DNA of 63,397 nt, filler included, from Octopus bimaculoides (Eukaryota), in assembly GCF_001194135.2 (NCBI RefSeq). It is 7 parts of 7 records of this genome, joined end to end, with 100 filler letters (N's around TTAATTAATTAA, not from the genome) between each part and the next. Parts side by side here need not be neighbours in the genome. Positions count along the whole stretch, not along the records: positions 17,058 to 39,945 come from NC_069002.1; 6 more parts are not named here. The stretch is one strand, 5' to 3'. The translations under genes were made by a program, and so were the position numbers. The notes beneath the pieces were generated by a model. It had not been told where the DNA came from and ran no database searches. It saw nothing but the letters and a program-made list of their open reading frames with translations. Below are positions 37,810 to 38,122 of this stretch, one piece after another. How positions within the stretch are numbered: the first letter of the stretch is position 1; each line of letters starts with the position of its first letter.

Positions 37810-38122
37810 TAGATAGAGAACAGTTAGATAGATATGCAATGTGAATTGATATTTTAAAATTTAATAACATTCCTTTGTATTTTCTTCTACCTTCTTTATT
37901 TGCAGTAACACCGTTAAGGGCATTTTTAACCAATGTACAAAAGAATATTGTTATCTACACGAACTTATACCACGTCGTTCTTGCTGTTTAGGTTTAAGAT
38001 GTGTTTGTAAAAAGATAAGGCATAACTGCTGGTGTAGTTCACAAAATGTGATTCATGTGATGAATAACGGCATGATACAGACTGTAGCCTCTATCCTGAG
38101 CTCCCTTGCAATATTATACTGA
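34449..38122 (+). CDS. Agatoxin-like (8-Cys ICK/knottin) precursor 2 with hydrophobic C-terminal tail, spliced join(34449..34512,35906..35954,37906..38122), 109 aa
   Basis: Hand-spliced translation: MKSLSVLLFCVFVSYTFSDKE-N-VTHTGTVVSFTIVTK-S-NTVKGIFNQCTKEYCYLHELIPRRSCCLGLRCVCKKIRHNCWCSSQNVIHVMNNGMIQTVASILSSLAILY*. GT-AG junctions, phases 1 and 2, 64+49+217=330 nt. Cys spacing C-x4-C-x10-CC-x4-C-x-C-x6-C-x-C. Confidence 0.8.
35906..35954 (+). CDS. Knottin gene 2 coding exon 2 (NVTHTGTVVSFTIVTKS)
   Basis: Strong acceptor taatttctctttcag|AT, donor AG|GTAAGA at 35955; 49 nt, phase 1 to 2. Confidence 0.7.
36011..36205 (+). mobile_element. SINE family C copy (AAGGCGGCGAGCTGGCAGAA head)
   Basis: Head ...GTTCAAATTCTGCCGAGGTCGACTTTGCC and core GGGGTCRAT. 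Other copies near 5-190(-), 9213-9330, 10294-10462, 18014-18190, 20018-20220, 36222-36360, 39220-39410, 52875-53035 and 54125-54245(-). Confidence 0.85.
37092..37390 (-). mobile_element. Diverged SINE family B-related copy in intron 2 of knottin gene 2
   Basis: Shares the gtgaaattaacgtgcaa...cactccacag core; has a different tRNA-like head with CAGTTCGACTCC B-box. Confidence 0.7.
37906..38122 (+). CDS. Knottin gene 2 coding exon 3 (8-Cys knot plus hydrophobic tail)
   Basis: Long polypyrimidine acceptor ttttcttctaccttctttatttgcag|T; 71 open codons to TGA at 38120-38122; no ATG before the knot, so absent from the ORF track. Confidence 0.85.

Follow-up and report, generated by a model that had tools for sequence, protein, structure and literature searches.

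Spider toxins with eight cysteines and an inhibitor cystine knot (ICK), such as omega-agatoxin IV and purotoxin-1 (PDB 1iva, 1agg and 2kgu; Pfam Toxin_9 and Toxin_7), have the framework C-C-CC-CxC-CxC. The abbreviation CKAMP denotes a cystine-knot AMPA receptor modulating protein. CKAMP44, an endogenous eight-cysteine protein tethered by a transmembrane (TM) segment, modulates AMPA receptors (review PMC3849787), and lynx1, which is anchored by glycosylphosphatidylinositol (GPI), modulates nicotinic acetylcholine receptors (PMC3849787). Furthermore, engineered GPI-tethered toxins (omega-agatoxin IVA and omega-conotoxin MVIIA) inhibit Cav2.1 and Cav2.2 upon expression (PMC3849787). Here we analyse a gene of Octopus bimaculoides (LOC128250516, hereafter referred to as gene 2) that lies in a window of 63,397 nucleotides (nt), filler included, and encodes an eight-cysteine, knottin-like domain followed by a hydrophobic C-terminal tail; positions are those of the window unless a paralogue locus is named. 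We tentatively favour a reading, to which we give somewhat less than an even chance, in which gene 2 is a divergent member of a lineage-restricted family and its tail is a conserved module that serves most likely as a membrane anchor, most probably through GPI.

Gene 2 lies in a piece of the window (17058-39945) that is identical to chromosome CM046622.1 (GCA_001194135.2) at approximately 29.17-29.19 Mb. RefSeq models two isoforms of LOC128250516, of which XP_052831638.1 ('uncharacterized protein' isoform X2) has 109 amino acids (aa) encoded by three exons; a Pfam search of this protein returned no domain. The splice sites are all GT-AG, and the three exons joined give the protein of the RefSeq model (Table 1). 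The last (eighth) cysteine codon, TGT, occupies 38033-38035, and the frame to 38122 reads CVCKKIRHNCWC and then SSQNVIHVMNNGMIQTVASILSSLAILY and the stop. The tail, SSQNVIHVMNNGMIQTVASILSSLAILY, is encoded by 28 codons, AGT to TAC (38036-38119), and is ended by TGA at 38120-38122; no residues lie beyond its hydrophobic stretch, and nothing would be cytoplasmic. The original prediction had taken this tail for a possible GPI signal that one copy gained after duplication. Its reading of the residues behind the last cysteine is borne out in the frame of XP_052831638.1, and the gene 2 sequence has the two accompanying features that it named, an Asn-Val-Thr (NVT) sequon past the signal peptide and the absence of a dibasic site before the knot. 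The endoplasmic reticulum (ER) signal peptide, MKSLSVLLFCVFVSYTFS before DKE, was judged by inspection and is conserved among the paralogues. The sequon straddles the junction of exons 1 and 2 (DKE-N-V-T), and just before the knot gene 2 has SNTVKG aligned with SDKIKR in paralogues, gene 2 thus having lost the KR cleavage site.

The tail is not peculiar to gene 2. Relatives were found by phmmer, in a full HMMER scan of 1.84 billion representative proteins, and all of them come from O. bimaculoides and map to the same chromosome: P0002 (LOC128250514, 114 aa), P0004 (LOC128250536 isoform X2, of which P0008 is isoform X1), P0005 (LOC128250541 isoform X3) and P0006 (LOC128250517), with E values of 1e-10 to 1e-20. 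Scanning the paralogue loci for the motif CC-x-C-x-C revealed three further intact terminal exons, Pa and Pc in locus L001 and Pd in locus L004, which end no annotated coding sequence in the gene lists; the 13-kb span of LOC128250514 includes Pa. Assembly gaps flank several of these exons, and the cluster may therefore exceed its annotation. Family terminal exons number seven at 29.17-29.22 Mb, and a further two or more lie at 36.39 Mb. Members share a three-exon plan, in which a signal-peptide exon and a short pro-region exon are followed, via a phase-2 intron (...CAG^T, the caret marking the splice boundary), by the terminal exon, and the gene 2 acceptor TTTGCAG^T is homologous to that of all paralogues. 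The signal-peptide exon (61-64 nt) was located in gene 2, gene 1 (the other family gene of the piece), P0002, P0006, P0004 and the Pd gene; none was found for Pa or Pc in the fetched loci. Most members have a KR or KK site before the knot (SDKIKR, SDRIKR, SGKCKR and SNKTKK).

Eight of the nine family terminal exons, gene 2 included, carry the tail. Its conservation, in frame and as far as one common stop codon in at least seven terminal exons besides that of gene 2, exceeds what chance would give. The tails are 28-35 residues long, with a hydrophobic stretch of 16-23 residues, and follow the consensus C-x-C-SSQN-IH---NG-(I/L)QTVIAFLIFLVNLPSY and stop (alignment A1), also written SSQN-IH---NG-LQTVIAFLIFLVNLPSY. 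By alignment, gene 2 is the most divergent tail-bearing member. Thus, the proposal that one copy acquired the tail after duplication fails, because the tail is the norm and ancestral hallmark of the family, gene 2 has its weakest version and gene 1 is the exception. Three word-indexed protein searches, one for exon 3, one for the whole protein and one for the exon of gene 1, returned the query itself or nothing; these searches also missed P0002, which shares seven 5-residue words, so their negatives are uninformative on orthologues. A 543-aa ENA repeat protein (P0003, E = 8e-18) was rejected as a relative, since its score sums seven weak repeats at 28% identity and its cysteines are unconserved.

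The tail is coding and looks selectively maintained. In the tail DNA alignment, gene 2 keeps the family TGA and differs by an in-frame 6-nt deletion, its tail being two codons shorter than those of the family, with VASILSSLAILY in place of VIAFLIFLVNLPSY. In Pd, a 1-nt deletion shifts the frame into the family 3′ untranslated region (UTR; L004 17739-17800, minus strand), so that NLPSY and stop become NFNLIDVLFL and stop, and P0005 has the same type of C-terminal end, in which the hydrophobic stretch is lengthened to 23 residues. The frameshifted Pd product is still hydrophobic, suggesting that composition rather than the exact sequence is kept, as expected of an anchor signal. Among the paralogues other than gene 2, the tail is the best-conserved DNA segment, with a nucleotide identity of 82-97% (73-74% when the frameshifted Pd copy is compared); introns share 46-87%, 3′ flanks 56-86% and knots 52-72%. 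By the Nei-Gojobori method, the ratio of nonsynonymous to synonymous differences per site (pN/pS) at the non-cysteine positions of the knot is approximately 1-2, reaching 6.4 for Pa-Pb, the closest pair, and both dS and dN of the knot are high among paralogues. Four comparisons of the gene 2 tail with paralogues, which are not independent of one another, give a pN/pS of 0.43-0.62 with Fisher p between 0.011 and 0.18, and nonsynonymous divergence of the tail is significantly below that of the knot, with p from 5e-5 to 0.02. This contrast shows the knot loops to be evolving in a relaxed or diversifying manner and the tail to be under constraint.

Family tails have KD15 values of 1.9-2.5 and 19-residue insertion free energies of +2.6 to +6.5 kcal/mol, on the same scale as -2.9 for the glycophorin TM segment and +7.3 kcal/mol for CD59. 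In hydrophobicity the tail resembles the GPI signals of CD59, DAF and PLAP and not the glycophorin TM helix; a standard TM helix of 19 residues would seem to require a longer and more hydrophobic stretch. The N-N-G triplet of gene 2 obeys the rule of small residues at omega and omega+2, with a 9-residue linker before it and 18 residues after omega, and a canonical omega/omega+2 triplet occurs at the aligned position in five of the eight tail-bearing members. The layout of a GPI signal claimed for gene 2 therefore stands in part: the signal peptide, the polar spacer of about 12 residues and the uncharged terminal stretch are in place, whereas the omega-site is not clearly canonical.

On these grounds GPI anchoring is the leading, if provisional, explanation of the tail. 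The signal peptide would bring the family protein into the ER, where its marginally hydrophobic C terminus would be held at the membrane and exchanged for a GPI anchor, either at N-x-G, about 10 residues past the last cysteine, or at the knot-adjacent SS pair; the hypervariable knot would then be displayed on the surface of the producing cell. Both the GPI attachment and the position at the surface are inferred, and so would be any effect on channels or receptors. A bolder version, in which the octopus family is lineage-specific, expands in tandem and comprises natural GPI-tethered ICK knottins, in effect endogenous 't-toxins', whose loops are positively selected to tune ion channels or receptors of the producing cell and whose individual members pass between anchored and soluble forms by alternative splicing at the donor in the tail, is in our view unlikely as a whole.

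Several observations weigh against a GPI anchor. The N-x-G triplet lies only about 4 residues ahead of the hydrophobic stretch (the usual distance being about 8-12) and is missing in P0004, Pc and P0005, and the SS pair, although suitably spaced, carries Q or K at omega+2. The stretch of gene 2 is the least hydrophobic of the family and holds Q, T and three S. Moreover, diversification of the loops is the usual mark of secreted toxins and immune effectors, which argues for release and not for tethering. The synonymous divergence of the tail among Pa, Pb, Pc, P0006 and P0004 (pS 0.05-0.15) is below that of the introns and 3′ flanks, and part of the conservation may therefore act at the nucleotide level. 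Candidate sources of the low pS are gene conversion, the splice donor inside the tail and a heterogeneity of mutation rate like that of conotoxin genes. Finally, one isoform of the Pd gene, deduced from coordinates, would trade the hydrophobic stretch for a hydrophilic end.

A possible splice switch emerges at that locus. The annotated 153-aa product of the Pd-containing gene ends at L004 17142, the stop of a small open reading frame (ORF), CHIMVSIKKTVMAELAVDDRRYG (L004 17145-17213, minus strand), which begins with a strong acceptor some 525 nt past the stop of Pd. Pd has an in-phase, consensus-like donor, CAAACT^GTAAGC, at Q-T^V of the tail (about 17795, minus strand), and its use fits the annotated length (75 + 55 + 23 = 153 aa). 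The donor-like sequence CAAACT^GTAA(G/T)C (GTAATC or GTAAGC) is kept in the tails of most paralogues, is absent in Pc and is weakened in gene 2. Past the gene 2 stop, at a comparable distance (about 600 nt), the acceptor at 38710-38719 shows a weak match (26 nt, E = 0.016) to that of the L004 alternative exon and, if spliced, would yield ...MIQT-WHSMLLQQIVVGRVV and stop. The original prediction had named transcripts that splice out the tail as evidence against it; one paralogue apparently makes such a transcript, in the isoform deduced above, and for gene 2 none of the guessed tail-less products (100, 103, 112, 113 and 114 aa) was present in a collection of 15 billion protein sequences. Known paralogue isoforms vary at the N terminus and retain the tail.

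Other functions of the tail have to be set against a GPI anchor. The tail may be a C-terminal propeptide, for sorting, folding or self-protection, whose removal leaves a soluble secreted knottin for venom, defence or signalling. The loops with pN/pS of at least 1 (the 6.4 of Pa-Pb being the extreme) next to a conserved signal peptide, KR site and tail recall the classical layout of toxin precursors, most paralogues have the KR site and are hence clearly proteolytically processed precursors, and the conserved Asn-Gly/Ser/Ala followed by Ile/Leu/Met resembles a legumain-type P1-P1′-P2′ motif. However, no dibasic or other standard cleavage site separates knot and tail, some members lack the N-G motif or have it displaced, and propeptides do not usually end in 16-23 hydrophobic residues, which would be prone to retention at the ER membrane; we consider this reading unlikely. 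An uncleaved tail is doubtful in a similar degree. It could anchor the protein in the cell that makes it, as a short TM or in-plane segment, or partition into lipid and so carry a secreted knottin into the membranes of its target, as a larger counterpart of the tail of omega-agatoxin IVA or in the way of the hydrophobic domain that big defensins of molluscs possess. It would accord with the AlphaFold2 model, in which residues 50-71 form a single helix over the tail at low confidence, with the Eisenberg mean hydrophobicity (0.56-0.68), whose low moment indicates a stretch of the membrane-buried type rather than an amphipathic surface helix, with the 23-residue, TM-length frameshifted variants ILQSIIALPIFLVNLHLIDVLFL and ILQTVSAFLVFLVNFNLIDVLFL, and with the short hydrophobic tails of omega-agatoxins IVA and IVB, the closest sequence matches. 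By contrast, the 19-residue insertion energies are all positive, the hydrophobic core spans just 10-15 residues, flanking positive charges and cytoplasmic residues are absent, and proteins of such a layout are normally GPI-modified or degraded.

Two further explanations were considered. Gene 2 could be a decaying or non-functional copy whose tail is an eroding remnant of the family module: its KR site is lost, its tail is the shortest and least hydrophobic, its internal donor is weakened, it diverges most among the tail-bearers, paralogue fragments lie nearby, and the collection of 15 billion sequences contains no transcript-derived copy of its protein. Nevertheless, its ORF is intact, with canonical splice sites, all eight cysteines and the conserved glycine; its indel is in frame, its stop is retained and its tail has a pN/pS of 0.4-0.6; and the two RefSeq isoforms are usually a mark of RNA-seq support, as we read them. 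Decay is thus improbable. Conservation of the tail could also reflect a constraint on nucleotides, in the form of an internal alternative 5′ splice site, an RNA element or local gene conversion, as the low pS among the paralogues other than gene 2 and the donor-like sequence, apparently used in one paralogue, would suggest. Yet a splice site accounts for at most about 10 nt, pN of the tail is well below pS when gene 2 is compared with the others, and the frameshift variant and the in-frame deletion each left an open hydrophobic frame; we regard this explanation as very improbable.

The domain to which the tail is attached can be called knottin-like. The eight cysteines and the glycine of CCxG are invariant in the nine terminal-exon products, in the pattern C-x4-6-C-x8-11-CC-x4-C-x-C-x4-8-C-x-C, which is the cysteine framework of the eight-cysteine, omega-agatoxin-like ICK peptides (C-C-CC-C-C with an extra CxC...CxC pair). 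Searched against PDB sequences, the family profile matched solely eight-cysteine spider ICK toxins, all of them marginally (E 0.02-4), with purotoxin-1 (0.021), omega-agatoxin IVB (0.076) and omega-agatoxin IVA (0.19) followed by mu-agatoxin, delta-palutoxins and agelenin. No significant match to a curated knottin or toxin family was obtained, Pfam Toxin_9, Toxin_7 and Toxin_35 remaining below their gathering scores (best E 0.0026), and gene 2 itself matched none of these three. Two AlphaFold2 models, of exon 3 and of the knot alone, each from a 6-sequence alignment, reached a predicted local distance difference test score (pLDDT) of 59-60 and have a β-hairpin at the CxC...CxC pair. Foldseek gave no match at E < 1 for either model; the list for the first, low-confidence model is rich in ICK toxins (TMt 0.5-0.62), and that for the second is meaningless. 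Together, the framework and the marginal matches make 'knottin-like' a reasonable reading of the pattern, with a putative ICK fold and putative knotted disulfides (I-IV, II-V, III-VI/VIII).

Compared with the spider toxins, the second half of the knot, CCxGLxCxC-x5-6-CxC, is near-superimposable (CCAGLKCRC in paralogue Pa and CCTGLKCKC in purotoxin-1), whereas the first two loops differ in length (x4 and x10-11) and the source is a mollusc. The tails also differ, the octopus tail having 28-35 residues, 16-23 of them hydrophobic, and the hydrophobic tail of omega-agatoxin roughly 10-12. This resemblance in sequence may be homologous or convergent.

Table 1 Features of gene 2, gene 1 and the unannotated paralogue exons
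Feature	Position	Strand	Description
Gene 2 polar spacer SSQNVIHVMNNG	38036-38071	+	About 12 aa; candidate omega-sites S-S-Q (38036-38044) and N-N-G (38063-38071)
Gene 2 uncharged hydrophobic stretch MIQTVASILSSLAILY	38072-38119	+	Helix predicted at low confidence; KD15 1.87, weakest of the family
Gene 2 stop codon TGA	38120-38122	+	Positional homologue of the family stop; in-frame 6-nt deletion just upstream (tail DNA alignment)
Gene 2 knot domain CTKEYCYLHELIPRRSCCLGLRCVCKKIRHNCWC	37934-38035	+	C-x4-C-x10-CC-x4-C-x-C-x6-C-x-C (alignment A1)
Gene 2 exon 1	34449-34512	+	ATG, signal peptide MKSLSVLLFCVFVSYTFS, DKE, first base of Asn codon; donor GTAAGT (tblastn and sequence reading)
Gene 2 exon 2	35906-35954	+	(N)VTHTGTVVSFTIVTK(S), pro-region with NVT sequon; reads NVTHTGTVVSFTIVTK; acceptor TTTCAG, donor GTAAGA
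Gene 2 exon 3, terminal	37906-38122	+	Pre-knot linker, eight-cysteine knot, tail, stop; phase-2 intron before it
Weakened donor-like copy ACT^GTAGCC in gene 2	38081-38089	+	GTAGCC at 38084 (tail DNA alignment)
Acceptor TATATTGCAG and 15-codon ORF WHSMLLQQIVVGRVV with stop	38710-38767	+	Candidate tail-less gene 2 isoform
Gene 1 exon 1	19612-19672	+	Signal peptide MKIILGFSFCVLSYA, MPLNN; intron phase and upstream AACAGG motif as in the family
Gene 1 terminal exon	26136-26328	+	(R)GRHKR, eight-cysteine knot, spacer HSLSLSQTALEG, CRKRK and stop
Pa terminal exon	L001 21940-22158	-	KR/KK site, eight Cys, full tail
Pc terminal exon	L001 16959-17177	-	KR/KK site, eight Cys, full tail
Pd terminal exon	L004 17739-17960	-	KR/KK site, eight Cys, full tail

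Gene 1 is, by alignment, the most divergent member of all and the sole one of the nine without a hydrophobic stretch. It carries an HKR site before the knot, and its spacer HSLSLSQTALEG has 12 residues, the length found in the family, with the basic end CRKRK in place of the hydrophobic stretch. Read-through of its stop into a hydrophobic KNRCLLFFLIHFVYHFFFSFFLL was considered and rejected: the T-rich DNA past the stop does not align with the family tail DNA, and KNRCLLFFLIHFVYHFFFSFFLL was accordingly treated as an effect of composition. The RefSeq isoforms X1 and X3 represented by P0008 and P0005 add 22-34 residues before the signal-peptide methionine, with an acceptor just ahead of the ATG (...CV^MK...); these residues would bury the signal peptide and could be an artefact that arose when long 5′ UTRs were modelled.

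The piece that holds gene 1 and gene 2 is AT-rich (37% GC), is rich in microsatellites and contains assembly gaps at 17304-17662, 25317-25957 and 37430-37766; tRNA and Rfam scans of it gave no matches. Downstream of gene 2, an exon-2-like fragment at 39133-39162 (plus strand) reads GDYVSLSNMT, agrees with P0002 residues 31-40 at 9 of 10 positions and has a GTAAGA donor behind it. Since the vicinity holds no corresponding exon 1, the fragment is likely to be what is left of a further paralogue. A minus-strand pseudo-exon with 'CCNNIECHC' (38602-38811), which contains the plus-strand acceptor at 38710-38719, was rejected as a paralogue relic because it has no support at the DNA level. An interspersed repeat of about 100 bp occurs in two copies that are 85% identical, at 28543-28642 and at 37102-37203, the latter within the final intron of gene 2, shortly before an assembly gap. 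The gap at 17304-17662 is flanked on both sides by a 17-bp minisatellite, TTACCAGTTCGCCTCCT (17058-17300 and 17663-17890).

Among described systems, lynx1 and the Ly6-uPAR proteins follow the same proposed logic, being endogenous, disulfide-rich mini-proteins of a toxin fold with a signal peptide and a hydrophobic C-terminal signal, whose tethering at the cell surface could bring them to channels or receptors. However, lynx1 has a three-finger fold with 10 cysteines, whereas the octopus proteins have an eight-cysteine, ICK-type framework, the sequences are unrelated, and GPI anchoring is demonstrated for lynx1 and predicted for the octopus family. No LU domain (Ly6/uPAR, with its CCxxxxCN end) was matched in the PDB or Pfam searches, and the octopus cysteine pattern is of the ICK type; the likeness to lynx1 would thus be one of functional analogy only. 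In CKAMP44/Shisa9 a true TM helix is followed by a long cytoplasmic tail, which in the Shisa family bears a PDZ ligand, whereas the octopus proteins stop at the hydrophobic stretch; no sequence similarity of the family to CKAMP44/Shisa was detected, and its proteins do not qualify as members of that group. Given CKAMP44, a tethered knottin is less unprecedented than the original prediction held when it called such a protein unusual for the ICK fold. The engineered tethered toxins combine a signal peptide, an ICK toxin, a linker and a GPI signal, which would be the architecture of the octopus proteins if these are GPI-anchored, although the engineered toxins are artificial. Precursors of the conotoxin type are likewise molluscan and tandemly duplicated, with conserved signal and pro-regions, a KR site, fast-evolving inter-cysteine loops and raised dS; the octopus family differs from them in its unrelated signal sequence, its eight cysteines with CxC pairs and its long, conserved hydrophobic C-terminal extension.

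Our literature search found nothing on these loci, on octopus ICK peptides or on natural GPI-anchored knottins. The family is thus an undescribed one of fast-evolving, agatoxin-like prepro-peptides, annotated as 'uncharacterized protein' and lacking a Pfam domain. Even should the tail prove to be removed as a propeptide or to partition into lipid, the octopus set remains an undescribed family in which diversifying loops are clearly set against a conserved tail and in which splicing may switch products from anchored to soluble. Were the tail a GPI signal or a membrane anchor of another kind, the family would be the first natural membrane-tethered one of ICK-type knottins that we could find. Its design would parallel that of the engineered tethered toxins that silence channels, and the animal that carries it is noted for innovations of its nervous and chemosensory systems.

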